Source: Macrostomum hystrix
Taxonomy: Eukaryota > Animalia > Platyhelminthes
DNA: 64,000 nucleotides
Reading direction: 5' to 3'
Assembly (NCBI GenBank): GCA_950097015.1
Contig: CATNEN010000003.1
Span: 4,030,001-4,094,000, forward strand
In this document: piece by piece, positions 166 through 61,138 of the stretch
Layout of the letters: every line of letters begins with the position of its first letter
How positions within the stretch are numbered: position 1 is the stretch's first letter
Program-made: the position numbers and the translations under genes
Notes under the pieces: generated by a model
Told to the model about the DNA's origin: nothing
What the model saw: only the letters and a program-made list of their open reading frames with translations
Database searches by the model: none

Positions 166-3100
166 ATGGAAAATATAATACGAAAAGGTCATCAATTAGA
201 AGGACAAATACTACTAATTTGCTTCGTTGGCCTCGCCTTCTTCTGGTAAGAAAATAGTTTGGACATTTGTTTTCAACTTCTCTTTCAAACTAAGTAACTT
301 CAATTTCGTCTGCGAGACCGGCCTGCCCAAGTTATAGCAAATCAATTTCACAAAATGAAACTTCTTTTTTGTCTTGCATTATATTCACCCGGCTTCAAAC
401 ATTATTATATGCCATGATGGGCCTGTACTTTCAATATATATTTTGGACGTCTCAGGCAAGACACCCAAGTGGGAGACAAACAACAAAAGTAGCGCGTATT
501 GTCACTCCAATAAGATTGGAGCTTCAAGAGCGGCTGGATGTGAAAGTTTCTGCGCAATCCAATTACGAGTAGCTGTATTTTTTATTGTGATTCTGTGCTA
601 TAGGGTCATAAATGCACAGGGCTTTAAATCTCTCGACACTCGACAGAATTATTATAATTGCATTGCGGCGGAGTCAGTGGCGGCGTCGGCGAAGATCAAG
701 GGCAAGGATAAAATCCGTATTTGTCAAAGCGGACCAAACACAAATAGCTGTGCTGAAGAGACGAAACACAAGTTACTAACGCCAGCCGGAAAGCCACCGG
801 GCGAAATTGAAGTTACTAAGTTTGAATTAGAAGTTGAAAACCAAAATTTTAAGCACTCTGACTAAGAGACTAGATTTGTTATTATTTATTTAGCAGTCGC
901 TCTCTAAATTTAAACTGTTTAACAGGATGCAAACTTTCATCTGTAATCTCCTACTTTAGGTTTAGGTTCATTCACTCGCTTACTGCAGTGTGTACTTTGA
1001 TTTATTTGATGCTAAAATGAAGGACTAAATGAATGGTCATTATTGACAATAAGAATGTGAATTAGACTTTAACAACCAGAAAACTAACCATAGTTAGAGG
1101 AAGGGGTCCCCATCACAAATTGTGATCCTCAAGACTGCGGTAAACATGGTATTAAACTTTGAAGTTGAAACTCGTGCTTTGCAGAGCAGAAGTTCATCTT
1201 TCTTCTTCTTTCAGTCAATGCTGCTAGCCATTTAGCAGTCAGCAATTAATTAACTACAGTTACGTGTCTTCCACAGAGTACCACCACCCCCTGTGCATTA
1301 CAGCTTTGATTAAATTTTCTTACACTATTAAGTCAGTCGCCAAATGAAGTGCGCGCTTGTGCCTTAGCGAGTAAATAGTGCGCTCTTGCGCATATGTCTG
1401 ACAGCGCGCTTATGCCACAGCGTGTCAAAAGTGCGCGCCTCTGCCAGTGCGCGCATGTGCCGCTGCGCGCTTATGAAGCGTTAATCCCGGTATTGGGTCA
1501 GTTTTTTTACCCCGATCCCGGGATTTGGGAAGCCCTAAAGACAATAATTACGACCGAGGCATGTAGCTTCGGCCACATGTTTTGTTAGGCAAGCGGCGAG
1601 ATTAAATATGCCATCCAGAGCCCGATTTGCCACGTAGCGTAATTTTATTAAAAGCGAATAGATGGTCTGTCCTATCTTCGTATCATTTTTTCTCCCCAGA
1701 TTTTTTCTGTTTTTTAACATCTCTGAAAAGTTTTAGAATCGAGGCGGCGAACCACTACTGCATCCACGACAGCATGAAGGTCTTCTCCATGAACGCTGAC
1801 TCGGACCAGACAGAGACACTGTTGACGAGCCACGGAGATATGGAGCTCCACGTGCCGCGGCAGCGCTGCTTGTGGGACGTGAATATCAACCGCATGACGG
1901 AGCCGCTGCAGCTGGTGCTGAGTCTGCGCCGAGGCCGACTGTGGCAGGAGGCAGCGAACGCGACCGGCTGCCCGTCGGAGCTGAGTGTGGCTCTGCAGGG
2001 TGAGCGGACTGTTGCAGGACTGTGTCCTTCACCATTGAATGAGCAAATCAGTCACGCAAAGCAGATCCCTCCTCACTCCAGGATCTGGATTCCACCGAGA
2101 GTGGAGAGACGGCTCATCGTTACCGAAGGCCCCTCTGATTGTGCCAGTGTATGAAAGGTGAGCTCGATACTCTGAGTGTTTCTAGAATATCCAATTCGCA
2201 CACGAGAGATTCGCGAGTCATTGAGAATGCACCGAACTGGCTGCAGCTCGCAGCAGCTCATCGTCAGGTTCTCGACCGGAGATCTCCAGCCTGAGGCGGT
2301 CTGCGGTCGCATCGAGCTGACCATCGGCGTCGCCAAGAAGGGATACTGCGGCAGGAACATGCTGCTGCATCGACATCGCTGCCTCTTTGTCTCCGACGAG
2401 AAGCTAGAGCTGCCAGACCTGACTGGGACTGGAGCAGAGCTCGCTAGCATCTCCGGCATTGAGCAGCTGCGAGACCTTCTGAGCGACAGTGAGAGCTGAG
2501 TCGCAGCCTGTTTGTTCTTTCCTTCTGTCAGTTGAAAAGCCATATGTAGTCAATTTGCGACGCGATCATTTTAGATGAGAAGCGGAGAGCAAAGCACCCG
2601 TACAAAGCCCCTCTGAACCTGAGGGGCTCCACCAGAGTGGGGATTTTCCGCTGCACTGGCTCTAACTGGACATTTTACCTGAACTCCAGCAGCGATGGGT
2701 GTGCGGCGGCGCCGTTCGTTCAGGAAGGACAGAAAGGCCAGCAGAACTCCAGGTCTGTGAATATAGCACCGAGAGTCGCATTGCTGAGAAAGGGGAACTA
2801 TACCCCTTCCGCTTCTTTTACCTGCAATTCGAGGAGAAATTCCACAAGATTCCAGGAAATATCCCTTTTTAAGAGAAAGTGTGGAGAGGTTACAGATAGG
2901 TTTGCTTAATTAGGTGATCCGTTTTTAGTTGTTTCCACGTTAAAATGATCCTTAGTGAGATGTACAGTTCAGGTGTGTACTTTTATACTTATTGTGATGT
3001 CTTGCAATTCAAAAGCTTCATCAGCAGTAGAACTCACAAAAGGGGAGTTTCCCACAGAACGGGGCAACGCTAGCACGCGACACTCAAAGCTTTGCCAGCC

Positions 3101-3823
3101 TTCAATCTTTATCAGCACGTCACCCGAATGTGCCTGCATCATCTCCGACTTTTGTTGGTCACCGACCTTTATCTTGACGGAGCTGCTGGGCCTTCAACAA
3201 GTAATAGTTGACTTTAGGCCAATCAGCGAAAGTATAAAAAAGCTTTAGGGACTCCACAGCAAGCTGCATGCTGACGGTGCTGACGACATTGGGCTGGTGA
3301 CTGATTTATTGACATACTAGGCGAGGGTCCTGTGATTGAGCTTGGTCCCATATTGAGGCCTGATCATCGAGATGGGAGAAATTTGCATCAGGGTGTCCAT
3401 ATTCGGCTGGTGCCACTTGTTGAATAACCTTGGTCCCCTTGGTACAAAAACGGGCGGTGAAATGGCTTGTAGTCCTACTGTTAAAATTACTTTTTCATCC
3501 ATTCTATTTACAGAGAAAAGTCTACTGAGTTTATGTGCGCATCTATGAAGATAATTTCTGATAGCATTCATGAGCTGATGTTCTTAAACTGCAGCAGTTC
3601 AGCCAGATGTCTGCTCGGCTTTGACGAGACTCCCAGGCCCACACGGAGCGCCGCTATCGATGGCGAAAGTTCCAGGTGCAATGAAGCGCTTCAGGCAGCC
3701 TGTCGGTTTGAGAAATCGGGCAGTATAGTATTTCCAAAGGTACTTCTAATAGCCACACTGTCTTTTTTAATTGTTATAGTTATAGTAGCTGTATTTTTCG
3801 CGGTGCAAAAGTGGAAATTTTAG
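166..3823 (+). CDS. CUB-like/CTLD-like type I membrane protein, paralogue 1 (last exon type A, nearly tail-less)
   Basis: Manual splice model: exons 166-245 (hydrophobic ILLICFVGLAFF, GTAAGA donor; least certain exon), 1731-1999, 2082-2157, 2247-2488, 2575-2752, 3514-3823. All introns GT-AG, phases 2,1,2,1,2; open 384-aa product. CUB-like motifs: YC..., RCLWDVNI, LQLVLSL, GCPSELSV, QLIVRFST. CTLD-like motifs: CGRNMLLHRHRCLFVS, GAELASISG, RVGIF, CASM, LMFLNCSS. TM VLLIATLSFLIVIVIVAVFFAV, then QKWKF-stop. Confidence 0.75.
1345..1540. mobile_element. Possible DNA transposon termini (GCGCGC-rich subterminal repeats; hAT-like end)
   Basis: Repeated TGCGCGCTTGTGCC-like units ending at ...GTTAATCC, followed by CCCGATCCCGGGATTTGGGAAGCCCTA (reverse strand TAGGG...). 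No partner ends found. Confidence 0.3.
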
Positions 3824-4389: not shown

Positions 4390-6112
4390 CAAATAACGTG
4401 ATTTTACACAGTCTTATAGCGGCAAGTCTCTTCTTTATATTAATTCAAATCTTTTTTCTAAGAGACTAAGGAAAGAGAAGTTATCAACGAAAAACTAACA
4501 GGACCTCAAACACAGACTTACAGTAAATCAACAAGCAAGCAAAAATGACCAACATTTGAGTGGTTGCGAATATGAAGTTTTCTCGTAGCAATTGAAACGC
4601 TCCTCTTCACTCGTCGGTGGGAATGCTTGACTTCTCAACGTAGTCACCGCCGAGCTGAAGGCATATTTGCCACCGACTGAACAAACCGTCAATAGCGTTG
4701 GTATAACTCTCGCGTGGAATTTTGTGGAGCAGGACATTCCGCACTGCCTGTTCGAGGTTGTCACGGTTCTCATGAACTTTACCTCGCAGATGCGACTTCA
4801 TTAGTGGAAATAAGGCGAAATCTGCTGGCGCCAGATCAGGCGAATACGGTGGATGAGGCAGAATATTAAACTTGAGTCTGCTGACAGCCTCAGAGGTCTT
4901 CTGTGCAGTATGGGGTCTGGCGTTGTCGTGGTGGAGAAGAAAGGGCTTGATTCCAACCCGACGCTTATTCCAGATTTCGACTTCAATTTTTCAAGGGAAG
5001 CAATATAGCACTCGGCATTGATGCTCTTCCCTGGCTCAAAAAATTCGATTGTAAGTGGTCCATTCCTGTCGAAGAACAAAGTCAGAAGCACCTTTTTGCA
5101 GTAAGGCTCTCGACGTGCCTTAACAGGGGGGTCTGAACCCCTGATTGTCCAAACCTTGGACTCCTGCTTGGTGGGGGGATCGAAGTGAGACACCCACGTC
5201 TCGTCACCAGTAACAACGATTTGCCGAAACGTTTCCCATCCACCATGTTGCCTGACGAGCTCCAGATTCTCCTGGCACACTCGCGGCCGCTGCTCTTTCA
5301 GGTCTGGTGTCAGAAGGCGTGGAATCCAGCGAGCGCTCAGCTTCACATAATCCATGCGGGTGAGACTTCGATGAACCGTTGATCGCGGAGTATTTAGCCT
5401 GTCAGCAATCTCTCTGATCGTCATTCGTGCGTCCTCATCAAGAAGATCCAGGATAGCGTCAGCCAGGACGTCAGAGTCTCGAACATGAGGGCGACCTGTC
5501 CTGAGCTGATCAGCAAGGTCCGTCCTTCCCGCTCGAAACTGTTCTATCCAAGGATAGATGGTCATTTTACTGACCGCGCAAGACCCATGAGCTGATGAAA
5601 GTTGCGCGTGAATCTCGGCTGCACTGTGCCCCGTCTTCCAAAGGGTGTAAATCACACTCCTCTGGGCAAAACTTTAATGCACATCCATGATCTTTGGCAC
5701 AGCAAGAAATAAGAAAAATAAGTTATCGTACTGAAGCCAAGTCCAAGTGAGAGATATGAAGATTTCATTACATCTTTTCCAGAGACAATTTCAAATTATA
5801 ACTTCATTATGATTTTTCCAGAGACATATCTTTGTCGCGGATTGAGAAATTGAGAAATTTTGGTTAAAAGAGTGACCTCAGTCGAAAGCACTTTCGTAGC
5901 ATTCCGATAGCTTGTTGATTTACTGTAAGTCTATGTTTGAGGTCCTGTTAGTTTTTCTCAATAACTTCTTTTTCCTTAGTCTGTTAGAAAAAAAATTGAA
6001 TTAATATAAAGAAGAGACTTGCCGCTATAAGACTGTGTAAAATCACGTTATTTGAACCATCAGAACAAAAGATATAATTAAAAGTAACACTACTTTTGGG
6101 ACAGCCTTCGTA
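4390..6112 (-). mobile_element. Mariner-type (DD34D) DNA transposon with defective transposase
   Basis: ORF pieces 4607-4801 and 4801-5688 carry an HTH region, WIPRLL, TGDETW, and in a shifted frame HHDNARPH and PPYSPDLAPAD. In-frame stop at codon 5 plus a frameshift. Inverted repeats of about 147 bp at 4390-4536 and 5910-6054; mariner-like terminus CTTTTGGGACAGCCTTCG-TA ending at 6110-6112. Confidence 0.9.
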
Positions 6113-6692: not shown

Positions 6693-8087
6693 GCACCTCT
6701 TAAGAGGGAATTGAAAATCTAGGTCGTGTTATGAATTATAAAATAACTGTCTGGATGCCTGGAATTAAAAAAAGCGCTGAAAACAGCTAGAAAAAATTGT
6801 TAAAATGCTAACATATATTACTCGTAAAAGACACTCGTAACTCGTAAGTGTCTTTTATATCTGTGCTAGAGACTGAACAGCCTAAAATAACATTTAGAGG
6901 TCAAGCGCAAAAGAAAAAGGAAATCTTCAGTTTTACACATTTTAAAGTATTGGAAAAAAATCGAGTCTTTGAATTGACCTGTGCGTGTGCTATAGAACGT
7001 AGACGAACGGTTATTTACCGCATCAGATTTATAAATCTGAATTCAGTATCTATAAAATCTCGCACTCGTAAAGTGCAAAGAAGAAAGTAAGTAAGCAAGG
7101 TAATGTATAGTTTTACAAGATTGAAACACTAAAAGATATTACGCTCAGGCAGGTAGGTTGGTGCTGCATTACAAAACATTAACAAAAGTATTTAGTTACA
7201 AGCAGATTGCAATAGTTGTATTCGTCGAGCCGCTCAGGTCTTGTTTCACTTGCTGGTTGAGGGAGCAGTGCCTGTCTGTGTTGTGTTGTGTGCGTGTTGT
7301 TTGTTTTAAGTTATTCAAGCTGCTAATTCTTATTCAGGCTTCAGCAAGAAGTTTACTTTCTTCAGCATTTAAGCCAGTCACGTGGCCAACACGCAGAATA
7401 AGACAGCAACTTTACTGGTAAAAGTACAGCGGAACTTCAAGCTTGAAGAAATTGTCTAGACTAGGGGGATGTTAACACCATATCCTCCTGCGCCTCCGAG
7501 AGTGGAGCGAATTCAGACAGAGGAAACCACGGAGTAATGTCTAAAAATAGAAACAATTGGAAATCACGCGGATTTTCCGTGGCCTACCCGCTCACAAGCG
7601 CACGTACACTGTCGTGAACAATGTGCATGCTTTAAAATAAAACGAACGAGACTTGGGTAGGTGGGTTGGGGTGGCTGAAACAGCGCAATTTATAAAGCTG
7701 CAAGTGGACACCTGAGTCATAGACTAATTCCTTGAATATACGCTCCCGCGTTGAATCACATTTTCGCAAAGCTTATTAATTATTTTCTTTTATTCAATTG
7801 CGTACAAAGCCAATATAGCACAAGCCATGAGACAGAGCGGTGGCATTCAGAAGATGATTAATAAGGCTGGAGGTGAGCACGCTTGCTTGGTTGCTAGCTT
7901 CGATATCAACTAAGATTTTTTTATTATTTTGTTTTGATTGGTGCCATCGAACATAAGCCAATATTTGACACGGCTAACACAACAACATTGAGACTTGTAC
8001 TATTTACAAAGAATTTGAAAGTTCTTTGGGCAGAACTTAATTACAGTTTCAAAGCTAGATATGATTTGACCCATGCAAAGCCTTGAC

Positions 8088-9893
8088 CCATAACTGGAAC
8101 CAGGTTATATTTACCAACACCCATAACTAGAACCAGGTTATATTTGCCAGCACCCATAACTGGAACCAGGTTATATTTGCCAACACCCATAACTGGAACC
8201 AGGTTATATTTGCCAGCACCCATAACTGGAACCAGGTTATATTTGCCAGCACCCATAACTGGAACCAGGTTATATTTGCCAGCACCCATAACTGGAACCA
8301 GGTTATATTTGCCAACACCCATAACTGGAACCAGGTTACATTTGCCAGCACCCATAACTAGAACCAGGTTATATTTGCCAGCACCCATAACTGGAACCAG
8401 GTTATATTTGCCAACACCCATAACTGGAACCAGGTTATATTTGCCAGCACCCATAACTAGAACCAGGTTATATTTGCCAACACCCATAACTGGAACCAGG
8501 TTATATTTGCCAACACCCATAACTGGAACCAGGTTATATTTGCCAACACCAATAACTAGAACCAGGTTATATTTGCCAACACCCATAACTGGAACCAGGT
8601 TATATTTGCCAACACCCATAACTGGAACCAGGTTATATTTGCCAGCACCCATAACTAGAACCAGGTTATATTTGCCAGCACCCATAACTAGAACCAGGTT
8701 ATATTTGCCAGCACCCATAACTGGAACCAGGTTATATTTGCCAACACCCATAACTGGAACCAGGTTATATTTGCCAACACCCATAACTAGAACCAGGTTA
8801 TATTTGCCAACACCCATAACTGGAACCAGGCTATATTTGCCAACACCATAACTGGAACCAGGTTATATTTGCCAGCACCCATAACTGGAACCAGGTTATA
8901 TTTGCCAGCACCCATAACTGGAACCAGGTTATATTTGCCAACACCCATAACTGGAACCAGGTTACATTTGCCAGCACCCATAACTAGAACCAGGTTATAT
9001 TTGCCAACACCCATAACTGGAACCAGGTTATATTTGCCAGCACCCATAACTGGAACCTGGTTATATTTGCCAACACCCATAACTGGAACCAGGTTATATT
9101 TGCCAGCACCCATAACTGGAACCAGGTTATATTTGCCAGCACCCATAACTGGAACCAGGTTATATTTGCCAGCACCCATAACTGGAACCAGGTTATATTT
9201 GCCAGCACCCATAACTGGAACCAGGTTATATTTGCCAGCACCCATAACTGGAACCAGGTTATATTTGCCAGCACCCATAACTGGAACCAGGTTATATTTG
9301 CCAGCACCCATAACTGGAACCAGGTTATATTTGCCAGCACCCATAACTGGAACCAGGTTATATTTGCCAGCACCCATAACTGGAACCAGGTTATATTTGC
9401 CAACACCCATAACTGGAACCAGGTTATATTTGCCAACACCATAACTGGAACCAGGTTATATTTGCCAACACCCATAACTGGAACCAGGTTATATTTGCCA
9501 GCACCCATAACTGGAACCAGGTTATATTTGCCAGCACCCATAACTGGAACCAGGTTATATTTGCCAGCACCCATAACTGGAACCAGGTTATATTTGCCAG
9601 CACCCATAACTGGAACCAGGTTATATTTGCCAGCACCCATAACTGGAACCAGGTTATATTTGCCAGCACCCATAACTGGAACCAGGTTATATTTGCCAGC
9701 ACCCATAACTGGAACCAGGTTATATTTGCCAACACCCATAACTGGAACCAGGTTATATTTGCCAACACCATAACTGGAACCAGGTTATATTTGCCAACAC
9801 CCATAACTGGAACCAGGTTATATTTGCCAGCACCCATAACTGGAACCAGGTTATATTTGCCAGCACCCATAACTGGAACCAGGTTATATTTGC
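8088..9893. repeat. 33-bp minisatellite (CCCATAACTGGAACCAGGTTATATTTGCCA[G/A]CA)
   Basis: About 55 tandem units with no spacers; each unit has an imperfect palindrome ATAACTGG-AA-CCAGGTTAT. Confidence 0.97.
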
Positions 9894-10221
9894 AACCACT
9901 AAAGTTAAAATTAGGTCAGTCAGTCAATCAACTACAGCCTATCAATACATCTAGGCCCAAGCTGTGATCTGCACGTGAAGATCTCAAAGTCAAAATATCT
10001 GCGTTCAAAAAAAATTTCAGAGATTCTCCATGCTTCTCTGGCTAAGAATGAAGATTTCAAGCCTTCAGCAGAACCATCTCCTAGCATTGGCCAGGAAGCC
10101 AAGCCGAAAGTGAGCATTGCTGACGTGTATCCACGACTGATCAGGTCAACCCGCGCTTTCCCACCAATTGCTGGGCCTTGCTTGCTCAACTGGAAGTGAA
10201 AGTTCAGTTTCAACTGCGGAT

Positions 10222-11612
10222 TGACGTTTGAGGATATTGACGGTTGAGGATATTGACAGTTGAGGATATTGACGGTTGAGGATATTGACGGTTGAGGATA
10301 TTGACAGTTGAGGATTGAGGATAATGACAGTTGAGGATATTGACAGTTGAGGATATTGACAGTTGAGGATATTGACAGTTGAGGATATTGACAGTTGAGG
10401 ATATTGACAGTTGAGGATATTGACAGTTGAGAATATTGACAGTTGAGGATATTGACAGTTGAGGATATTGACGGTTGAGGATATTGACGGTTGAGGATAT
10501 TGACAGTTGAGAATATTGACAGTTGAGGATATTGACAGTTGAGAATATTGACAGTTGAGGATATTGACAGTTGAGGATATTGACGGTTGAGGATATTGAC
10601 AGTTGAGGATATTGACAGTTGAGGATATTGACAGTTGAGAATATTGACAGTTGAGGATATTGACAGTTGAGGATATTGACGGTTGAGGATATTGACGGTT
10701 GAGGATATTGACGGTTGAGGATATTGACGGTTGAGGATATTGACAGTTGAGGATATTGACAGTTGAGGATTGAGGATAATGACAGTTGAGGATATTGACA
10801 GTTGAGGATATTGACAGTTGAGGATATTGACAGTTGAGGATATTGACAGTTGAGGATATTGACAGTTGAGAATATTGACAGTTGAGGATATTGACAGTTG
10901 AGGATATTGACGGTTGAGGATATTGACAGTTGAGGATATTGACAGTTGAGGATATTGACAGTTGAGAATATTGACAGTTGAGGATATTGACAGTTGAGGA
11001 TATTGACGGTTGAGGATATTGACGGTTGAGATATTGACAGTTGAGGATATTGACGGTTGAGGATATTGACGGTTGAGGATATTGACAGTTGAGGATATTG
11101 ACGGTTGAGGATATTGACGTTTGAGGATATTGACGGTTGAGGATATTGACGGTTGAGGATATTGACGGTTGAGGATATTGACAGTTGAGGATATTGACGG
11201 TTGAGGATATTGACGGTTGAGATATTGACAGTTGAGGATATTGACGGTTGAGGATATTGACGGTTGAGGATATTGACGGTTGAGGATATTGACAGTTGAG
11301 GATATTGACAGTTGAGGATATTGACAGTTGAGGATATTGACGGTTGAGGATATTGACGGTTAAGGATATTGACACAGTTGAGGATTGAGGATATTGACAG
11401 TTGAGGATTTAGGATAATGACAGTTAAGGATTTAGGATAATGACAGTTGAGTATTGAGGATAATGACAGTTGAGGATTGAGGATAATGACAGTTGAGGAT
11501 TGAGGATAATGACAGTTGAAGATTTAGGATAATGGCAGTTGAATATTGAGGATAATGACAGTTGAGGATTTAGGATAATGACAGCTGAGGATTGAGGATA
11601 ATGACAGTTGAT
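10222..11612. repeat. 16-bp minisatellite (GTTGAGGATATTGAC[A/G]) changing to a 23-bp variant
   Basis: Tandem 16-mers up to about 11375, then GTTGAGGATTGAGGATAATGACA units. Confidence 0.95.
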
Positions 11613-12913
11613 GAATGAGAATTTTTGTCGTCTTCTACTGCATGCTAATTAAGCATTACAGGTACAAACAATATTAATAGTTTCTGTTCTGCTTACAAAA
11701 TAGTCGAACTCAAATGTCACAATAACTGCATAGCAATAAGCTTGTATATAATCAGTGCTTGGAATCAAAAGAATTTTCTTAATTTAATATTTGTGTATGA
11801 AATACTCTATCGTTGTTGGTACATCAAGCAACGTTAAAAAGACCCAATTTTCTAGCTATTGATTAATCCCTACTTCCTGGCTACTATGAATTCATTTGCT
11901 TTTTTGTGATTGTTGATCAAACTGTATAAGAACATTGTGCTTTTTAAGCGAAATCATGCAATATTAATGCAAAATAAGTACAAACTTGCTTTTTTTGTTT
12001 ATGGGTACATAATAAATGCATGGAATTGGCAAATTTCTTTATCGACTTTCTTATTTATTGGGATATATTTATTGGGAATGATTAGAACGAGACTTGAAAA
12101 ACTGGATTCATAGAAAATCCTAATTCCTAATTCCTAGAAATCCTATCTCATTCTTAGAAATCCAAACTGAAAGATATACCCATGTACTGAACTGAAATCT
12201 CATTTTATTCTAACAAATTTGACGTTCTATTTCGTAAGAGGATCCTACAGAACTCCAGACTCACATAAATCACCATTTGAATCGCTTGAATGTTTTTAAA
12301 ATAGCCTAAGTTCTTTACTGAAAATAATCTCAAGTTCAACCTATCCAGAGTTTGCTCCGTCTAAAGACTATAGCTTTGCAACCAGCAGAGCTTACTACTA
12401 TAGCAAACCAGTATTTGATACCCGAATTCAAGATAAGGCTGCGGGTAGTTTGTGCTTGGAGAGAGGAAACAATGGCCAAGGCTGCTATCTAATTCTATCG
12501 AGAATGCTCAACCCAATCGTGAGCCAGAGTACATGTGCTCACTTGAGTCACTTTGTAATTGAGCGATCTATCGCTGTACACTATAGGCTAAACAACACTG
12601 ATAGTGCATTGTGCACACAGTGATTTTAAAGGCGTAATCTGCTAGGCCAACGTTTGTTAATAACTGCGCACTCTCATACTGCACTGTGAGCACAAGGGCA
12701 GTACAAAATAGAATCAATTTTACGAGATAAATAAAAATAAATATCTCAGTCAAATTGTATTTCAGACAGAAGCATTTCTAAGTTTATTTTAGAATTCCAC
12801 TCAAGCATGAAAATATTGTGGCAAAATGCTTCTGGTAAGTTGTTGGTGTTCCTTTCAACATGTTGCTCTGATAATATAGAATGCAGGAACCAGGAAGGCA
12901 ATGGTGCATCCTT

Positions 12914-15265: not shown

Positions 15266-15460
15266 GCCTAACTTGAATGCAGTTCGCCTAACTTGAATGC
15301 AGTTCGCCTAACTTGAATGCAGTTCGCCTAACTTGAATGCAGTTCGCCTAACTTGAATGCAGTTCGCCTAACTTGAATGCAGTTCGCCTAACTTGAATGC
15401 AGTTCGCCTAACTTGAATGCAGTTCGCCTAACTTGAATGCAGTTTGCCTAACTTGCCTAA
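15266..15460. repeat. 20-bp tandem repeat (GCCTAACTTGAATGCAGTTC)
   Basis: About 9 units; a second array of the same unit lies at 24770-24932. Confidence 0.9.
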
Positions 15461-15554
15461 CTCACGCTAACAGCATAGACATGTAAAAAACATGTATGGA
15501 CATGTAACAGCAGTTCAGTACATGGACTGTAGGTAGGCCGATACATTCCGAGAT

Positions 15555-15720
15555 GTCTACCTCAGCTGATTAAGGAGCTGAGTAAGATCTTTCTTATAGA
15601 CTAAATCTTGCTCAAGGACACAAATCCTTTCTTTTAGGCTGAGATTTGAACTCACGACCTCTTATTTGGAAGCACGAAGCTTTCGCGCACGAACACGAAC
15701 ACGAAACAACTGGCCTACAA
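15555..15720 (-). mobile_element. tRNA-derived SINE relic, family 2
   Basis: Minus strand GAGGTCGTGAGTTCAAATC (B box), then GTGTCCTTGAGCAAGA and TACTCAGCT, as in the SINE at 46340-46506. Confidence 0.5.
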
Positions 15721-17537: not shown

Positions 17538-18082
17538 GTGTTGTGTCTCGAGGGGCCAACTCAATTCGGTCCAGTAGGGGAAGTTGGGGCCACCCCCCTG
17601 GAGACAACGAGGTCTTCCAGCCACATGGCGACACAGGAGAACTTCTAATTCGCGGCTGAGTGGAACCGGGGAAGCGCGCGGGGAAGAGAGGAACGAGGAG
17701 AGAGAGAGAGAAGGAGAGATGCAAGAGGCCAGAGGGATGAGGTGGGTGAACAGGGTGAGCACAGAAAGAGAATACAGAGCTCTGCTTCCAGCCAGCTGCT
17801 CTGACCACGCAAAACACAAGGCGAATCACTAGGGTTAGTCGCTGTCTCACCGCACAGCTCGCGGCCCGTCAATCTGACAGGGCCGGTCTCTGTCCAGGGT
17901 TTATTGCAGGAGGCCGCACAAGGATTTACCAGCGGGGCCGCCGGAGTCACGCGGCACGCAGACAGGCAGAACGCGGAAGCGCAGGGACGCGGAACGCAGA
18001 AAACGCGAAAACGCTACGTTAGGGAAGAGGAAAAAACTCGAGTCGGGAAAAGGGGAAACTTCGGCGTCGCTCCGCCGACAAC
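17538..18082. mobile_element. LTR-like insertion in intron 5 of paralogue 2
   Basis: GC-rich block starting TGTTGTG and ending ACAACA, beginning where similarity to paralogues 1 and 3 stops. No TSD seen. Confidence 0.4.
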
Positions 18083-18578
18083 ACTGCACAGTTGGCTCTC
18101 ATTTCGCTTGTTGGCTCACTAGTCCATACGATGCACCCGCCACAAAGGGGAACGGCAGAGGACTGTAAAGCCCCCTAAAAAGCCAGGGTTAGCAGACATG
18201 CACACACACGGGGCAAGCAACCAGAATGTGCAATAATCTGTGTCAATAACCAATCTGTAATTATCATAGCAATAACCAATGGGCAATGATCAGAGAACAA
18301 TAGCCGATGCGAAGTAAACAATGTGCAATAAGTCTAAAATAACGAAGTAGCGAGCGATATATACGAGCTATATATATGACGAGCGATTTGGATTTCAGGA
18401 ATTCCCGTAAAGTGTGCAGGCTGATTGTCTGCCTGTGTGTATTTTTATTTAGCAAATTAGGAAGAATGACTTGATCGATAATATTATTTATTCGTTTGGT
18501 ATTCGCATGTCCTACCTACTCTGATAATAGTGGAAGTAAGGGAAAATATTTGTTAAATATATATTGAATATGTTTAGG

Positions 18579-19345: not shown

Positions 19346-19349
19346 CGTT

Positions 19350-20474: not shown

Positions 20475-20720
20475 AATCTGCTGAAACCAAGAATCGATCG
20501 AAACGCAGATTCTTCCAAAACGCAGAATCTGCTGAAACCCAGAATCGGTCGAAATGCAGATTCCGCTAAAAGTTTGAATCTGCTGAAACCTAGAATCTGT
20601 CGAAATGCTGATTCCGCTAAAAGGCAGAATATACTGAAACCCAGAATCGGTCGACATGCAGATTCCACTAAAAGGCAGAATTTTCTGTAACACAAAATCT
20701 GCTGAAACGCAGAATCAGCC
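20475..20720 (+). repeat. 51-bp tandem repeat overlapping the tail-coding region and 3' UTR of paralogue 2
   Basis: AATCTGCTGAAACC-like starts at 20475, 20526, 20577 and 20628. Confidence 0.8.
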
Positions 20721-45049: not shown

Positions 45050-45790
45050 ATGACTCAAGTCTGCTATCAACAGTTGACAGTTGGTCAGAATTGGCTCATA
45101 AAACAGCTGACTCACATCTGTTATCAACAGTTGCAGTAGGTCAGCATTAGCTCATAAAACAGCCGACTCACATCTGCTATCACCAGTTGACAGTTGACAG
45201 TAGGTCAGCATTAGCTCATAAAACAGCTGACTCACATCTGTTATCAACAGTTGCAGTAGGTCAGCATTAGCTCATAAAACAGCTGACTCACATCTGCTAT
45301 CACCAGTTGACAGTTGACAGTAGGTCAGCATTAGCTCATAAAACAGCTGACTCACATCTGCTATCACCAGTTGACAGTTGACAGTAGGTCAGCATTAGCT
45401 CATAAAACAGCTGACTCACATCTGCTATCACCAGTTGCAGTAGGTCAGCATTAGCTCATAAAACAGCTGACTCACATCTGCTATCACCAGTTGACAGTTG
45501 ACAGTAGGTCAGAATTAGCTCATAAAACAGCTGACTCACGTCTGCTATCACCAGTTGACAGTAGGTCAGAATTAGCTCATAAAACAGCTGACTCACATCT
45601 GCTATCACCAGTTGACAGTAGGTCAGCATTAGCTCATAAAACAGCTGACTCACATCTGCTATCACCAGTTGACAGTTGACAGTAGGTCAGCATTAGCTCA
45701 TAAAACAGCTGACTCACATCTGCTATCAACAGTTGCAGTTGGTAAGGATTAGCTCATAAAACAGCTGACTCACATCCGTTTTCACCTGTT
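45050..45790. repeat. 56-64-bp minisatellite (TAGGTCAGCATTAGCTCATAAAACAGCTGACTCACATCTGCTATCACCAGTTGACAG)
   Basis: About 12 units with variable TTGACAG duplication. Confidence 0.93.
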
Positions 45791-46179: not shown

Positions 46180-48882
46180 ATGAATATTTTGCGCCACATG
46201 GCAGTAAATTTCCTTCTTGGTAAGCAGCCCAGAAAAGCAGCATTTCTGATTAATATTTTGCAAGCTACTTAATTTGTTATTTTGACTTCTTCGCTCTGTG
46301 CATGCTGCACTGGGTACAAACGGAGGTACTCAGGCACAGATGGCGAAAATGGCTCAAGCCTATTGCTGAGTGAGTCGGACTCATGACTTGAAGACCTGGG
46401 GTTCGATTCGCGACTCTACTAGAAAAAATTTGTGTCCAGTTAGGAAGACACTTAAATGTGCATTAATTTAGTTCACTCGGCTGCTACAAAGGTATACCAG
46501 CTTGCCAAATATTTGTTCATCCAATTTTGCACTTAAACTCTGAGTACACATGTAGGTGACGGTGCCTATTTTTAGAAAAATAGTGGTGCAGTGAAAAAGA
46601 TGCTTACTTAAAGCTTCTCAGCACTACTGCAAGGGAAAGTAATTAATGTGCGAGACCATCTCAATCTGGAACTTCAGCACTTTGTGTGCATCTCTCGCGT
46701 AGGGGCAGCGTATATATATATAGACATTAGCATCAGCAACTAACCCCCACCCCAAGATTGACGGCACATAGAAGGTTTGCGGCAGACAGTAAACCCAGCA
46801 GCCAATCTAAAGGGGCCAAGTGCGCTTGCACTCTAGGCGGCACGCATGCGGAACACATCCGAGCGTACTATAGCCATTATAATGTACAATCCTAACAATA
46901 ATAGTATCTATTATTATAAAGTAATTATTATGACTATTTTATCATTCGAAAACAGCTAAATATGGTACAATTGTACAACTGTGAACTGTACACGAACAGA
47001 GTTTGACGCAAATTATAATTGCGTGGATTGTCTGCAAAAAGTTTCAACTGGGACACTAGTTTATGGCGAAAACAATTACACTGGTGCTATACTGTATTCT
47101 GAGACGCTTGCAGCCTCTTTCTGCTGATTAAACATCAAGGAGCTGTTTGCACTATTTGATGTACCTGAACCGAAATTACAGCCACAAATACCAGTTTTTA
47201 TCTTTGAAACTAAAGACGATGCTGCCGACAATTACAGAACTACAATAAATATAGTACGTTCTGTCTACACACTTGCAAAAAGTTTAGATCAATTTCGTGA
47301 AAATGCTCACCACATTTCCTTCAGTGAAATTGGACCTCGCTCAAGTGGCGCAACTTGCTCATTAACTGCAGGCATGCTACAGACTCGACTGCTGATTGTT
47401 ACGTTATTCGTTTCTCAATCCGAGGCTGCGAACCACTACTGCATCCAGGACAGCACGAAGGTCTTCTCCATGAACGCTGACTCAGACCAGACTGAGACAC
47501 TGTTGACCAGCCACAGAGATATGGAGCTCCACGTGCCACGGCAGCGCTGCTTCTGGGAGGTGATGCTCCGCCGCATGACGGAGCCGCTGCAGCTGGTGCT
47601 GAGCCTGCGCCGAGGCCGACTGTGGCAGGAGGCAGCGAACGGGACCGGCTGCCCGTCGGAGCTGAGTGTGGCTCTGCAGGGTGAGCGGACTGTTGCACGA
47701 CTATGTCCTTCACCATTGAATGAGCAAATCAGTCACGCAAAGCAGATCCCTCCTCACTCCAGGATCTGGATTCCACAGAGAGTGGAGAGACGGCTCATCG
47801 TTACCGAAGGCCCCTCTGATTGTGCCAGTGTATGAAAGGTGAGCTCGATACTCTCAGTGTTTCTAGAATATCAAGTCGCACACGAGAGATTCGCGAGTCA
47901 TTGAGAATGCACCGAACTGGCTGCAGCTCGCAGCAGCTCATCGTCAGGTTCTCGACCGGAGATCTCCAGCCTGAGGCGGTCTGCGGTCGCATCGAGCTGA
48001 CCATCGGCGTCGCCAAGAAGGGATTCTGCGGCAGGAACATGCTGCTGCATCGACGTCGCTGCCACTTTATCTCCGACGAGAAGCTGGAGCTGTCAGACCT
48101 GACTGGGACTGGAGCTGAGCTCGCTGGCATCTCCGGCATTGAGCAGCTGCGAGACCTTCTGAGCGACAGTGAGAGCTGAGTCATTGACTTTTGTGAGATT
48201 GCCTAAAGTGATTGAAGCAAACTCAGTCCTGATGTTTTCTGTGACCAAATCATTTTAGATGAGCAGAGAAAATTAGAATATCCTTACAAAGAGCCTCTTG
48301 ACCTGAGCAACATCCCTCTGAGAGTTGGGGTGTTTGAATGCGCCAGCTCTGGCATCCTGGAATTTGGGAACTTCGGCAGTGGCTCCTGCATGATGCTACC
48401 GTTCAACTCAACGGGATTTTACTTGGCAAAAAGTACTAAAAGTGTGGAAGCCAGGTAAAACTTTGCTAGTCGGTGCAGTGAATTATTCTGTTTAGTGGAC
48501 TTTTCGCACACAATAAACAGATAGTGTTTGCATCTCCATTGCATCTTTAATGAACAGCAGCATAAAAGCTCCAAGTTTCAAGCGCCAATGCGGTGTTTTG
48601 CGGCTTGCTCAGAGTGGAAAGCGTCTGTTGGAACTGGGCCATTGTGGAATCAAGGTGCGGTCACTACTGTGCTTCAGTGAAGTCCCGGTAATTTTAGACA
48701 ATAGCAATGGGGTCTCGTGTGGGATCTGTTCAGTTTTATCCAATGAGGTGACCACGGATGGAAAAGCAGCAAAGATCATTTTGTCGATTGTTATAACATT
48801 GACTCTTGTTATATTGTTTGTTTTTTGGCGTTCTGGCCGTTACAATAAGTTACGCCGAAATATCGCGTTTAAACGCTTGTGA
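46180..48882 (+). CDS. Paralogue 5 (last exon type C)
   Basis: Exons 46180-46219 (tentative; ATG 47374 could be the start instead), 47372-47680 (contains signal-like MLQTRLLIVTLFVSQSEA), 47763-47838, 47927-48168, 48259-48454, 48558-48882; 395 aa open. TM IILSIVITLTLVILFVFW; tail RSGRYNKLRRNIAFKRL. Confidence 0.8.
46340..46506 (+). mobile_element. tRNA-derived SINE, family 2
   Basis: TGGCTCAAG (A-box-like), GGGTTCGATTC (B box), then GTGTCC...AAGACACTTAA and TTTAGTTCACTCGGCTG...GGTATACCAG. Confidence 0.6.
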
Positions 48883-51965: not shown

Positions 51966-54383
51966 ATGAACAAACTCGATATTGCTGTAGCACTCATTCT
52001 GCTCCTGAGCCAATTGTAAGTATGCAACTTAGTTTGTAGACTGCGCTTTAGACTAGTAAACTAGTATTTAGTATTTTAGTATTTAGTATTTAGTATTTAG
52101 TATTTAGTATTTTAGTATTTTAGTAATTACTAGTAGTATTTAGTTTTGAAGTTTTTTAGTATTTTCAACGTTTTTTCCCGATCCATTAAGAAGCTCACAC
52201 AATCTCATGCATAACTCAGATCATCACTACTCACACAATCTCATGCATAACACAGATCATCACTACTCACACAATCTCATGCATAACTCAGATTATCACT
52301 ACTCACACAATCTCATGCATAACTCAGATTATCACTACTCACACAATCTCATGCATAACTCAGATTATCACTACTCACACAATCTCATGCATAACTCAGA
52401 TTATCACTACTCACACAATCTCATGCATAACTCAGATTATCACTACTCACACAATCTCATGCATAACTCAGATCATCACTACTCACACAATCTCATGCAT
52501 AACTCAGATCATCACTACTCACACAATCTCATGCATAACTCAGATCATCACTACTCACACAATCTCATGCATAACTCAGATTATCACTACTCACACAATC
52601 TCATGCATAACTCAGATCATCACTACTCACACAATCTCATGCATAACTCAGATCATCACTACTCACACAATCTCATGCATAACTCAGATCATCACTACTC
52701 ACACAATCTCATGCATAACTCAGATCATCACTACTCACACAATCTCATGCATTATTCAAGTAATTTTACTGCTCACAATTGCTCAATATTATATTCTCAT
52801 TTTCAAATGATCTTAGACCATATAGAATGCTTGTTGTCTGAAGTCAGTTCTGTAAAGTGTTGAGATGAATTTACTTTGAATTGAATTGTTTCGTTTCGAC
52901 ACTGTTTTTCAGAGCTCAAGCCAAGATAAACTACTTCCCTAGCGATGATACTAGTCTTGAACTTCAGCTAGTGCTGAGCTCTAGTGAGACCTTGCTGACT
53001 AGAAGCACAGACCAGAAACAGCTCAGTGCAAACGAGACGCGCAGCACTATTGTGAAGCTACCATCAACTCAAGCGCCTCTGAACCTCATCGTCACAATTG
53101 CAAGAGAACACTCAAGTGGAGAACAGGCGAGAAACTCTGACGGATGGAAGGGCGATTGGCACCTTAATCTCCAGCTAATTTATGGTAGTAGATGACGAAA
53201 AATTTCTGATCTAAAAACAAAAACTCCCAAAACGACCTCTAACAACATCCCGATACTTTGCTCACTAGGCTCGAACTACAACAAGTCCTGGACGAGTCGA
53301 GACCAACTAACCAATGTTCCGCACATTATTCCCGTATTCAACAGGTTAGAACTCTCTTTGTTGCCATTTACTGGACAGTTTTGATTATTTTTATTCACCC
53401 ATTTCCCCCAATATTTACGACTCTGAACAGTTCCCAGCTGCAGCTAATCGTCACATTCTCGACGGGCGGCCTGAACGAGAACGTCAGCCATGCTGCATTA
53501 AAAATCAACTTCGAAATCGCCATGAAGGGATCCTGTGGCAAGAGCTTCCTGCGGCATCGTTCCCGCTGTTATTTTGTGTCCGACAAGAACTTGGAGCTGT
53601 CAGACCTGAGCGGGACTGGTGTTGAGCTGGCTGGGATCTCTGGCTTTGAGCAGCTGAATGAGCTCTTGAGAGACAGTGAGTTCTCTAACCCTTTGGGCAT
53701 AAATTTAATCTGCTTCTGTATTCGAACCAATTTTTGTGCAATCGTTGCAGATGAAGACTTGTCCCAGCATAGCAAGCCGCTGGACTTTAGCGAGCCAGTT
53801 TGCCTCGGAGTGTTTCAATGCTCAGTCAGTGAGCAGCTTCACTACTGGAACTTCAGCAATGGCTCCTGCTCCCCTGAGCAGTTTAACTCGACTGATGATG
53901 AGAATAGGACGCTAGAGAAGCAAGTGCCTTTCATTTTTGAATTGATAGTAATTTATTGACTAATTCAGAATATTTTCCTCAATCATCTGCAGAGTCCAAT
54001 CGCAGGGAAAACTCGACAGATGCCTAGCTGTGAAGTCCACTGGCAGAGAGCGTCCGGAGTACATGCTCTTGGACTGGAAGAAGTCATCAAGAAAGCTGCT
54101 GAGCTTTGAGCAAGCACCAAGCGATGGCATTTCCAAAATTAACTGCTTCAATGACATTGCGGCATTTTGTTCAAATAGAAGCTCTACATACAGCATTTTA
54201 TTTATCGACCTTTTACGAGTATTTATCATTCTAGTGTCACTCGTACTGATTGTATTGGTTGCCTGCCAAATCCATGCCAAGATTGTGAACAATCGATCAT
54301 ACAGGCCTGTACAAATGCAGATTAATCGCGGCAATCAAGACCATGTGACCGACACCTCAATCTCAGTTTGCTGTGTGGAGTAA
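51966..54383 (+). CDS. Paralogue 6 (divergent; CUB-like region lacks cysteines)
   Basis: Exons 51966-52015 (MNKLDIAVALILLLSQL, GTAAGT donor), 52913-53184, 53269-53344, 53431-53675, 53751-53919 (GC donor inferred), 53993-54383; 400 aa open. TM VFIILVSLVLIVLVAC; tail contains YRPV. Confidence 0.78.
52060..52753. repeat. (TAGTATT)n microsatellite followed by a 36-bp minisatellite (CTCACACAATCTCATGCATAACTCAGAT[C/T]ATCACTA)
   Basis: 7-mer at about 52060-52145; about 15 units of the 36-mer at 52194-52753. Both lie in intron 1 of paralogue 6. Confidence 0.93.
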
Positions 54384-54929
54384 CTCAATTATCTGTTACA
54401 GGCTTTTATACTCTGTTAGTTGTCCCATGGTAGCTAAACATTTTGGTCACTAAATTTGCGCCTCTTGTAGCCAAAGATCTACTCTCTCCCTGTCTCAATC
54501 TCAGCGAATCTCAAACGAACGAATGGATCAAGATCACGCATAAGAGTAAATGCAGATCCAGAATGCATTGCTATACTACGTGCTTCGGTCGTTTAAATGC
54601 AATTCCCGCTAGTCCAGCATATCCATTTCATTGCAGTTTTGTGTTTTTAGACGCTAGTTTTTTATATAAGTCAGTAGCTCGGCAGTATTGATATTGTTTT
54701 ACAATTTTCTAGCCATGACGATCAAAAGACTTTGACACCATCTCATAATCTGCAAATTTGTTTTTCGTATTAGTCCAAATTTTCACCTGGACCTTAAATA
54801 AAATTACATTTAATAACTTGAATTCCGTGTCGTCTAGTGATCCTAACCAAGAAATTTAATTTTCAACTTAGGATATCGTGCACTGTTCTTAACATGTTAG
54901 ACACAAGTCCTAACATAAAAGACAAGATA

Positions 54930-55545
54930 CTCAGCTGTTAGACAAGTGTCTCACCTGTTAGACAAGAGTCCCAGCTGTTAGACAAGAGTCCCAGCTGTTA
55001 GTCAACTGTTAGACAAGAGTCTCAGCTGTTAGACAAGAGTCCCGGCTGTTAGACAAGAGTCCTAGCTGTTAGACAAGAGTCCCGGCTGTTAGACAAGAGT
55101 CCTAGCTGTTAGACAAGAGTCCCGGCTGTTAGACAAGAGTCCTAGCTGTTAGACAAGAGTCTCAGCTGTTAGACAAGAGTCCCGGCTGTTAGACAAGTGT
55201 CTCAGCTGTTAAACAAGAGCCCCAGCTGTTAAACAAGAGTCCCAGCTGTTAGACAAGAGTCCCAGCTGTTAGACAAGAGTCCCGGCTGTTAAACAAGAGT
55301 CCCGGCTGTTAAACAAGAGCCCCAGCTGTTAGACAAGAGTCCCAGCTGTTAGAAAAGAGTCCTAGGTGTTAGACAAGAGTCCTAGCTGTTAGACAAGAGT
55401 CCCAGCTGTTAGAAAAGAGTCCTAGCTGTTAGACAAGAGTCCCAGCTGTTAGAAAAGAGTCCTAGCTGTTAGACAAGAGTCCTAGCTGTTAGAAAAGAGT
55501 TCTAGCTGTTAGACAAGAGTCCTAGGTGTTAGACAAGATTCCCAG
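54930..55545. repeat. 20-bp minisatellite (CAGCTGTTAGACAAGAGTCC), left arm
   Basis: About 30 units; the same unit resumes at 58404-58542. Confidence 0.95.
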
Positions 55546-59004: not shown

Positions 59005-61138
59005 ATGTATTTTAGCCGCATGTACCTGTTGGTTTTGAGCTGTGTAATTTATATTCAAGGGTAAGTCTGTAAGCTGATGTGGTATTAATTTATGTGCATC
59101 TCTATTTATGTACTTAAGTAATTGAAACATTAAGTAATTAAGTAATTGAGTAATTTGAAGTAATTAAAGTAATTAAATGGTCAGATTTAGCTGACTCACA
59201 TCTGTTACCACCAGATGTCAGATGGTCAGATTTATCTGACTCACATCTGTTACCACCAGTTGTCAGATGGTCAGATTTATCTGACTCACATCTGTTACCA
59301 CCAGTTGTCAGATGGTCAGATTTATCTGACTCACATCTGTTACCACCAGTTGTCAGATGGTCAGATTTATCTGACTCACATCTGTTACCACCAGTTGTCA
59401 GATGGTCAGATTTATCTGACTCACATCTGTTAACACCAGTTGTCAGATGGTCAGATTTATCTGACTCACATCTGTTACCACCAGTTGTCAGATGGTCAGA
59501 TTTATCTGACTCACATCTGTTAACACCAGTTGTCAGATGGTCAGATTTATCTGACTCACATCTGTTACCACCAGTTGTCAGATGGTCAGATTTAGCTGAC
59601 TCACATCTGTTACCACCAGTTGTCAGATGGTCAGATTTATCTGACTCACATCTGTTACCACCAGTTGTCAGATGGTCAGAATTAACTGTCAGATAACTTA
59701 TAGCTGGCATCCGACTCGCATTTCAGAGCTGTCGCTAAAAACTATTACTGTCATGATGGTGGACAGGTAAGTTTTTCCATGGAACTTAACTCGTCGCAGC
59801 AACTGATTTTTTTGGTCCGGGATGAAAGTCAGTTCAGTGCATCTCAGAAGTGCTTGTACACTGTGAATTTACCAATGAAGTCGGAACCTTCTGCACAGCT
59901 GCTTGTATGGATCAAGGTCTCGAACAGCGGCATCTTTTCACCAGGCGCACAGAGTGTTGGCTGTGATTGGCAGCTAAATATTTCTCACGAGGGTAAGCTG
60001 AAATGATGGAAATAGTATCAATGCTTCTCAGATACAACTTTGAACCAACCAATCAGACTGCAGACATACACATGGTGCGCTAATAAATTACTGCAGATTC
60101 GAGAAACAGCATGACGTGGACGAATGCTGACCGACTGCCTCCGATTCCGCTAATTTCTCCCCTGTCCAATAGGTGAGTGAAGAATTTCAGTAGTCTGTAA
60201 CTATTCAGCACGTCAGCGCGCCCGAACTGCCCGCAGCTCGCAGAAGCTGATCGTCAGATTCTCCACGGGCGCTTCAAAGCCAAGCGCCAGCTGCAATCTC
60301 ATCAATCTGAGTATCGACATCGTCAGCCAGGGATTCTGCGGCGGGAACATGCTGCTGCATCGACATCGCTGCCTCTTTGTCTCCGACCAGAAGCTGGAGC
60401 TGTCAGACCTGACTGGGACTGGAGCTGAACTCGCTGGCATCTCCGGTTTTGAGCAGCTGAATGAGCTTCTAAGAGACAGTGAGTGCTTTGCCTCTTCTCG
60501 CCTGAGCTTTGTTTTTATTCTGGATTCCGAATGCATGGATTTACGACCATTGCAGATGAGCTCAAAGGGATGGGTTCATTAGCCCAGTCATTGGATCTCG
60601 TGAGCAGCTATGTGAGAATCGGAGTGTTCCGTTGCGCCGACCTGCAGGTTCCCCGATATTTCAGCTCAACAATTCACGATATTAACCCATGCGGTCGAGG
60701 GCGATTCAACCTGACAGGATTTGACCTAAATGAGCAGATTGAAAGGTGAAATGCTGCATGGTGTACTCTTTTGTGTTCAAGAAAAATCGGATACTAGTAC
60801 TGAGATTTGCCTTTGATTTCAATTTCAGCATCGCCAAGGATTCATCTTGGACCCTCAAGTGCGCTTCCGTGAAGGCTTCCAGCGACGGGAAAATCAGTTT
60901 GGTGTTCTCGAACTGCAGTCAGCCAATGAGATCCCTACTCAGCTTTCTTCCTGCGACGTCATCTGCGCTGACCACAGAAAATGTTCGCACAAGCTGCTTG
61001 GAGCCATTTCAGAAACTGTGCAGCTCTCCTCCGCTGAGTGACGAAACAGGTTTTACTTGCGACACGGGGCGCAATTTAATAATCTCTCTAATGGTCGTAA
61101 TTTGTATTTGTCTGGTCAACAGCCAGTGGCTTAGATAG
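59005..61138 (+). CDS. Paralogue 7 (divergent; short hydrophobic C-terminus)
   Basis: Exons 59005-59060 (MYFSRMYLLVLSCVIYIQG, GTAAGT donor), 59727-59992, 60097-60172, 60237-60478, 60556-60745, 60829-61138; all GT-AG, phases 2,1,2,1,2, 379 aa open. Ends LIISLMVVICICLVNSQWLR. Confidence 0.82.
59177..59681. repeat. 45-bp minisatellite (GATGGTCAGATTTATCTGACTCACATCTGTTACCACCAGTTGTCA)
   Basis: About 11 units in intron 1 of paralogue 7; related to the array at 45050-45790. Confidence 0.95.

Follow-up and report, generated by a model that had tools for sequence, protein, structure and literature searches.

Proteins that combine a CUB domain with a C-type-lectin-like domain (CTLD) in one extracellular chain are familiar from the CLEC proteins of Caenorhabditis elegans and from vertebrate attractin. 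The nematode CLEC genes represent a lineage-specific expansion arranged in gene clusters, and most CLEC proteins are secreted rather than being single-pass membrane proteins. To our knowledge, no repertoire of variable surface receptors has been described in free-living flatworms. Macrostomum is a model genus, with transgenesis and RNA interference established in M. lignano. We have analysed a stretch of 64,000 nucleotides from Macrostomum hystrix (“the window”; assembly GCA_950097015.1, contig CATNEN010000003.1, here called C3, C3:4030001-4094000), which carries a tandem array of genes for what we interpret as type I surface glycoproteins with a CUB-like head and a strongly drifted lectin-like domain, forming a branch of a larger Macrostomum family. 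Taken as a whole, this account appears to us reasonably probable.

When the stop-to-stop segments of the + strand are compared as protein, four conserved coding blocks are recognised that occur in the same order in all copies, and in addition a final block that is strongly divergent between them. Splice models were built by reading the DNA copy by copy and placing GT-AG introns around these conserved blocks, with mostly GTGAG or GTAAG as good donors and with pyrimidine-rich acceptors. This resulted in seven + strand gene models (c1 to c7) with conserved intron phases (2,1,2,1,2), reaching from the ATG of c1 at 166 to the stop codon of c7 at 61138. Exon 3 is invariant at 76 nt, exon 4 measures 242 nt (245 nt in c6), and introns 2 to 4 are 75–90 nt long. 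An initial annotation made from the letters of the window had proposed seven spliced copies on the same strand, with shared intron phases, the same exon 3 and exon 4 lengths and a C-terminal hydrophobic helix, and all of this is borne out by self-comparison of the window and the rebuilt models. It was also right that the predicted proteins are open or nearly open, but their length, given as about 380–430 amino acids (aa), actually ranges from 379 to 446 aa. Judged by hydrophobicity, each has an N-terminal leader and a single, strongly hydrophobic segment close to its C-terminus. The leader had been credited to copies 1, 5, 6 and 7 only; it is found there, but leader exons also exist in c2 and c3, and c4 has a candidate. 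The proteins contain 11–18 cysteines and 2–8 N-x-S/T sites.

The first copy, c1 (166-3823), consists of exons 166-245, 1731/1737-1999, 2082-2157, 2247-2488, 2575-2752 and 3514-3823, with all introns GT-AG. Acceptor 1737 creates a TGA at the junction of exons 1 and 2, while the tandem acceptor 1731 leaves the frame open (384 aa); the tail beyond the transmembrane helix is 8 aa. The exons of c2 (16207-20569; 446 codons) are 16207-16274, 16500-16762, 16845-16920, 17009-17250, 17335-17512 and 20056-20569, with an intron 5 of 2.5 kb. Its leader (MTKQLKKLQVAC...) is the same as that of c3 (25167-27837), which is fully open (433 aa) over exons 25167-25234, 25458-25720, 25803-25878, 25967-26208, 26293-26470 and 27363-27837. 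In c4 (33732-42111), a candidate leader exon at 33732-33829 precedes exons 34823-35085, 35168-35243, 35332-35573, 35658-35835 and 41667-42111; reading from exon 2 gives an open frame of 400 aa, which the candidate would extend to 433 aa. The five exons of c5 (47374-48882), at 47374-47680, 47763-47838, 47927-48168, 48259-48454 and 48558-48882, are fully open (381 aa); there is no intron 1, as the leader is fused to exon 2, and exons 5 and 6 form a type found in no other window copy. Two copies are diverged. The exons of c6 (51966-54383) are 51966-52015, 52913-53184, 53269-53344, 53431-53675, 53751-53880 (or -53923) and 53993 (or 54006)-54383; it is 55–61% identical in exon 4, and several family cysteines are missing. 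The last copy, c7 (59005-61138), is fully open (379 aa) with exons 59005-59060, 59727-59992, 60097-60172, 60237-60478, 60556-60745 and 60829-61138, is 70% identical in exon 4, and has almost no cytoplasmic tail.

The assembled genome that was searched has 42 contigs with a total of 220,453,370 bases. All database, family and structure searches were made exon by exon or with database proteins as queries, while the joined translations served for mutual alignment, substitution counts and the location of exons at loci in this genome. A profile built from the exon 4 peptides of c1 to c7 strongly recognised eight places, namely the seven window copies and an eighth copy located 5.8 kb upstream of window position 1 (C3:4022716-4025955, with the exon 4 match at C3:4024216-4024455), and gave weaker matches elsewhere on C3 and on contig C25. 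The eighth copy has exons 2, 4 and 5 closely matching those of c1 to c5 and a last exon closest to that of c7, its exon 3 region being different or degenerate-looking. With a broader exon 4 profile, which combines the window copies with distant paralogues, at least 59 places were found, grouped in arrays on C3 (0.65, 1.11-1.18, 1.375-1.449, 2.07, 4.02-4.09 and 5.04-5.09 Mb), C25 (8.75-8.95 and 9.32-9.69 Mb), C26 and C7. For 14–15 of the further paralogues, exon 5-like and exon 6-like pieces follow downstream in the right order, and about a dozen have an exon 2-like piece upstream. The count of seven members in the initial annotation is thus correct for the window, but the locus holds eight and the family many more.

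Outside M. hystrix, the family was found in a single species. A HMMER search with the exon 4 profile against 1.84 billion representative proteins returned four true matches, all from M. lignano, and two word-index searches added five further proteins of that species, making nine relatives in total. The exon 4 profile found no family member outside Macrostomum among the 1.84 billion representatives, and the read-through open reading frame (ORF) of c6 found no homologue when used as a query of protein databases. As far as databases show, the family, with about 60 genes predicted from the exon 4 matches, is restricted to the genus Macrostomum. The homologues are recorded as spliced gene products in two sources. 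Four of them (P0001, P0003, P0004 and P0008) are colinear with our spliced models and continue without a gap over the junctions of exons 2/3, 3/4, 4/5 and 5/6, so that these boundaries are independently supported by another species. As the junctions are identical in the M. lignano proteins, and the exon order is identical in paralogues elsewhere in the genome, chance can be excluded as the source of the predicted gene models.

The public annotation of these M. lignano family members is unreliable. The names given are “hypothetical”, “uncharacterized”, “secreted protein” and, in three cases, “CUB domain-containing protein”, while three relatives bear unrelated names (“FHA domain-containing”, “Tub domain-containing”). 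P0006 (UniRef A0A1I8IA47) and P0007 (A0A1I8GUX1) are chimeras in which the end of one member is joined to the start of the next; as they fuse neighbouring copies, M. lignano has tandem copies that were mis-joined by annotation. Exon 3 is skipped in P0002 and P0007.

Self-comparison of the window revealed a repeated unit, about 1 kb long, at 1724-3085, 16498-17538, 25445-26806, 34821-35799 and 47421-48182, with 95–96% DNA identity, and diverged copies near 53440-53680 and 60220-60490 (75–82% identical). The unit corresponds to exons 2 to 5 including the introns (1724-2778 in c1) and is common to c1 to c5 and the eighth copy. Among c1 to c5, introns 2 and 3 are 97.8–98.8% identical, exon 3 98.7%, exon 4 97.0% and exon 2 93.9%. 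The identity stops before exon 6, and in c5 already within intron 4. Exon 6 itself falls into types: those of c1 and c3 are 77% identical and those of c2 and c4 91%, while c5, c6 and c7 each stand alone, and between types protein identity is only 26–39%. The best explanation for this mosaic, a near-identical block joined to divergent last exons, is that exons 2 to 5 were copied over older genes, either through gene conversion or through segmental copying in recent times. We rejected a transposable element as the origin of the 1 kb repeat: the unit consists of conserved coding exons with their introns, and the first and last exons on either side of it are specific to each gene. Judged from these sequences, the cluster is a distinct subfamily among the arrays of the genome, with eight members, six of them with the homogenised block, and with alternative last exons.

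The ratio of nonsynonymous to synonymous differences (pN/pS) within the block is 0.64 for exon 2, 0.22 for exon 3, 0.77 for exon 4 and 0.45 for exon 5. Diversifying selection, which was considered, is not supported by such values. Exon 2 (e.g. 1737-1999) is less alike between the copies than the adjoining introns 2 and 3 (2000-2246 with exon 3), and its synonymous difference (0.078) exceeds the intron difference. The divergence of exon 2 probably marks the edge of a conversion tract rather than selection.

In the account that we favour, the locus comprises eight genes, seven of them in the window, with six exons each. Exon 1 would encode the signal peptide; exons 2 and 3 with the first third of exon 4 a CUB-like jelly-roll beta-sandwich; and a very divergent long-form CTLD would begin in exon 4, after that first third, and continue through exon 5 into the first part of exon 6. 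What follows in exon 6 would provide a cysteine-bearing stalk, a single membrane helix and a tail that varies between 1 and 78 residues. In the lectin-like domain, the N-terminal cysteine hairpin and one later cysteine pair would have been kept, and both partners of the helix-1/strand-5 disulfide would have been lost, as would the calcium/sugar motifs. The array would have grown by tandem duplication. Gene conversion, or segmental copying of very recent date, would since have kept the exon 2–5 block nearly identical in six copies, while exon 6 remained in about five old and very different types. The gene structure, the family with its range, the homogenised block, the CUB-compatible fold and the lectin-like N-terminal third rest directly on the sequence and structure comparisons. 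From the architecture we infer recognition receptors that are exposed at the cell surface and bind ligands outside the cell, the ligand being more likely a protein than a calcium-dependently bound sugar.

For the N-terminal domain, the evidence is mainly structural. An AlphaFold2 (AF2) model of M. lignano P0008, which covers the leader and the whole domain and was made with 23 alignment rows given exon by exon, has a mean predicted local distance difference test score (pLDDT) of 71.6 and a predicted TM-score of 0.55, with nine strands following the signal helix. Foldseek with this model listed SID-1 ectodomains first (E 6.5e-4), followed by many CUB domains, among them those of C1r/C1s, neuropilin, meteorin, MASP, NETO2 and TSG-6. 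The ESM Atlas model of a distant member, P0009, has CUB domains as its nearest clusters (TM 0.59–0.72). Both results fit a jelly-roll beta-sandwich of about 110 residues. In profile-profile comparison (hhalign) against twelve CUB domains from the same genome, exon 2 falls on the “nC-x-W-x-I” region of CUB (P 0.035 with 7 sequences; 0.0054 with 18, covering just 11 columns, CxWxV) and the first part of exon 4 matches the “l-x-v-x-F-x-S-D” strand (P 0.06–0.2); the two alignments are colinear and neither is significant. Four cysteines stand at positions suitable for a CUB domain in c1 to c5 and c7, most of them being absent from c6. The modelled N-terminal domain is a CUB-compatible jelly-roll sandwich, and it likely belongs to the CUB family proper; proof of membership is precluded as other sandwiches score alike and Z does not exceed 8, the collagen-binding domain of ColG and SIDT domains being matched too. 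Canonical CUB domains (PF00431; spermadhesins, C1r/C1s/MASP, neuropilin a1/a2, meteorin, Kremen, NETO) differ from the family domain in being recognised by Pfam and in their second cysteine pair, as conservation in the wider family is limited to the first two CUB-position cysteines.

The end of exon 2 (1960-1998; G-C-P-S-E-L-S-V-A-L) resembles a stretch of exon 4 (2290-2330; V-C-G-R-I-E-L-T-I-G), also in other copies, and MAFFT repeatedly placed the one upon the other. These may be two equivalent cysteine-strand elements of the sandwich. Where MAFFT superimposed exon 6, or the last part of exon 2, on exon 4, the alignment was discarded in favour of trimmed references.

For the second domain, the evidence comes from the exon 4 profile. 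Against a reference profile of fourteen canonical long-form CTLDs from the same genome, seven exon 4 sequences aligned to CTLD columns 3–52 (hhalign probability 77.9%, P 1.8e-5), and a family-wide profile of 27 sequences aligned to columns 3–56 over 51 columns (90.3%, P 1.5e-6), while the same profile compared to CUB as a control gave P 0.2. The features coincide in order: the C-x10-12-C of the family falls on the long-form hairpin, “CY-x-V-S” on “CY-x-F-S”, “AQLASF” on “LASI”, and the following helix on helix 2. These matches cover the hairpin, the “CY-x-V-S” strand, helix 1 with the “LASI” strand behind it, and the beginning of helix 2. A contiguous profile of database proteins and exon rows extends the alignment to “RVGVF” at the position of “WIGL” (P 2.8e-4). 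For the lectin-like region, 27 of the 30 nearest ESM Atlas clusters are Lectin_C (score 0.91). Exon 6 contains a nearly invariant cysteine pair, 17–19 residues apart, with a hydrophobic “LLSF” 7–10 residues later; in CTLDs, cysteines C2 and C3 and the hydrophobic strand 5 have such a spacing. The domain would have a length of about 138–152 aa. These data support the interpretation that the second half of exon 4 is CTLD-like, from the cysteine hairpin through helix 1 and the “LASI” strand to the start of helix 2.

Compared with long-form CTLDs (PF00059), both those of this genome and those of natural killer (NK) cell receptors, the family is alike in the hairpin, “CYxVS”, helix 1, “AQLASF” and helix 2; in addition, “RIGLF” stands where the contiguous profile reaches WIGL, and the spacing of a later cysteine pair would suit a CTLD. 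It differs in that it has no Pfam match and in that the C-terminal two thirds of the domain are undetectable by profiles. There is no conserved helix-1 cysteine, and “LLSF” stands where F-I-C would be expected, so that both partners of the helix-1/strand-5 (C1-C4) disulfide are absent together. No EPN/QPD or WND motif for binding of calcium and sugar is conserved in the exon 5 and exon 6 alignments of the family, while GEPNN and WND are present in the canonical CTLDs of the genome. If the domain is a CTLD, calcium-dependent sugar binding is not expected, because these motifs are absent. NK gene complexes consist of genes in tandem clusters, as do the family genes, but NK-cell receptors are type II proteins while those of the family are predicted to be type I. 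The CLEC proteins of C. elegans and attractin share the CUB and CTLD combination with the family; their domains are recognisable by Pfam, and they have no sequence relation to the family, the exon 4 profile having found Macrostomum alone.

Several results count against our interpretation, and they bear on two competing explanations. One is that the second ectodomain is not C-type-lectin-like at all, with the likeness being limited to the cysteine-hairpin and helix motif, and with exons 5 and 6 forming a new or different fold. We consider this rather unlikely. Neither Pfam CUB (PF00431) nor Pfam Lectin_C (PF00059) matched single exons or the M. lignano relatives at E up to 10, and none of the 71 CUB and 66 Lectin_C matches (the latter at E ≤ 1e-5) in the genome lies within the cluster. 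Profiles of 23–24 sequences gave no significant match to the CTLD profile, neither for exon 5, where R(I/V)G(L/I/V)F (“RIGLF”) falls on WIGL with P 0.26, nor for exon 6, where nothing matched (P 0.35). An AF2 model of the lectin-like half of P0003, made with exon-wise rows, is unreliable (mean pLDDT 54.1), and Foldseek with it found nothing at E ≤ 0.001; its order of elements (beta-beta-alpha-alpha-beta x5) is CTLD-compatible, albeit in an unreliable model. Against PDB sequences, the family profile reached best E values of 0.4–1.4, not significant, which include one NK-receptor CTLD. The missing helix-1 and strand-5 cysteines and EPN/WND motifs would also be explained if the fold were different. 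However, the significant exon 4 alignment is in the right register and is carried on to the WIGL position by the contiguous profile, the domain length and the spacing of the conserved cysteines and “LLSF” fit a CTLD, both partners of one disulfide have been lost together, and the ESM features point to Lectin_C. The initial annotation had seen CUB and CTLD patterns in degenerate form. What stands is the fold class for CUB, with a weak sequence signal, and the CTLD likeness of the second half of exon 4, which does not extend with significance to exon 5 or at all to exon 6. The structure search that it had suggested, run on M. lignano proteins, returned a CUB-compatible sandwich for the one half and no reliable model for the other. 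Its proposal of a lineage-specific family of transmembrane proteins, of which the ORF track shows only fragments, is supported; the proteins are predicted to be type I, and Pfam overlooks the family as well. The roles that it inferred, in innate immunity, allorecognition or gamete recognition, would be candidate functions.

The other explanation is that the array has largely fallen into decay and is unexpressed, most copies being pseudogenes that still look open because they were recently copied. The last full codon of exon 2 in c2 is a TAG, so that this copy would either be a pseudogene or escape the stop by using a donor at 16747, 15 nt further upstream, which would skip the TAG. In c4 the exon 2 acceptor is weak (AAG, with no pyrimidine tract), as is the 5' end as a whole, and intron 5, which is 5.8 kb long, contains a retroelement. 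In c1, an open junction after exon 1 requires the alternative acceptor, and intron 5 of c6 is ambiguous, being either of phase 2 with a weak donor (387 aa) or of phase 0 with 82 nt (397 aa), both open. The pN/pS range of 0.2–0.8, with the highest values in exons 2 and 4, indicates only moderate constraint. Yet c3, c5 and c7 have consensus splice sites and a fully open frame throughout their six or five exons, and the old, diverged c6 and c7 retain frame, phases, cysteines, leader and transmembrane helix. Exon 3 has the lowest pN/pS, the M. lignano homologues are spliced gene products, and the family has been retained in at least 59 places. We therefore regard general decay as distinctly unlikely. 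It is also unlikely, if slightly less so, that the proteins are related to reproduction rather than being immune or environmental receptors, either residing on the sperm, egg or antrum surface or being shed into the ejaculate, with their turnover reflecting sexual selection in a hypodermically inseminating hermaphrodite. This would agree with the genus-restricted range, with the fast divergence between M. hystrix and M. lignano, with the occurrence of CUB-only spermadhesins, which are seminal proteins, among the fold matches, and with the high turnover of reproduction-related genes reported in a Macrostomum genome paper (PMC10468722). A membrane anchor and a tandem array suit immune-type receptors equally well, however, and pN/pS is not above 1.

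The tails of the predicted proteins vary from 55–78 residues (c2 and c4) through 38–53 (c3 and c6) to 1–18 (c1, c5 and c7). Those of c2 (exon 20056-20569) and c4 (41667-42111) contain N-L-E-Y-I-S-V, and no such tyrosine occurs in the short-tailed copies. L-E-Y-I-S-V fits the loose pattern (I/V/L/S)-x-Y-x-x-(L/V/I) of an immunoreceptor tyrosine-based inhibitory motif (ITIM), although a single such motif in two exons that are 91% identical could be due to chance. A paired-receptor system, in which neighbouring genes join the near-identical binding head of exons 2–5 to alternative tails, is conceivable but very unlikely. Receptors with a long ITIM-like tail (c2, c4) and those with almost none (c1, c5, c7) would then bind the same ligand and give opposite or different signals, and the locus would be an invertebrate analogue, of type I and with CUB plus lectin domains, of the paired receptors of vertebrate NK cells.

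This Macrostomum-only family of about 60 genes, invisible to Pfam, is a concrete candidate for a variable surface-receptor repertoire, because of its tandem arrays, patch-wise homogenisation and alternative tails. It also illustrates that domain-based annotation misses or mis-joins many genes of this genome, as it does in M. lignano with P0006 and P0007, and it may serve as a test case for the drift that the folds of CUB and C-type lectins can undergo. Its interest is reduced in that the domain combination and lineage-specific receptor expansions are familiar from other invertebrates.

The window also contains mobile elements and repeats. Intron 5 of c4 contains the remnant of a long terminal repeat (LTR) retrotransposon (37126-40386, - strand), whose ORFs are spread over several frames and which accounts both for the length of that intron and for an island of 55% G+C. 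It includes an integrase (rve, Integrase_H2C2; 37126-38031, - strand), a reverse transcriptase (38430-39275, - strand) and a weak, sub-threshold zinc-knuckle (zf-CCHC; 39826-40386, - strand). Between c1 and c2 there is a mariner/Mos1-type transposase ORF (Transposase_1, HTH_48; 4801-5655, - strand), and a PIF/Harbinger-type DDE_Tnp_4 fragment (42582-43058, - strand) is found just 3' of c4. Eight minisatellites occur at 8086-9899, 10220-11616, 19349-19936, 21222-22619, 45051-45790, 52194-52758, 54895-55545 and 59177-59688, and for five of these arrays self-match offsets indicate periods of about 66, 84, 32, 72 and 90 nt. Minisatellites sit in intron 5 of c2 (19349-19936) and in intron 1 of both c6 and c7, and they yield long spurious ORFs on both strands. 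A dispersed repeat of 421 nt, 98.6% identical, is present in intron 5 of c2 (18681-19101) and upstream of c3 (23800-24220). As 15299-15966 and 24607-25052 are also shared, c2 and c3 have upstream sequence in common that includes the leader exon.

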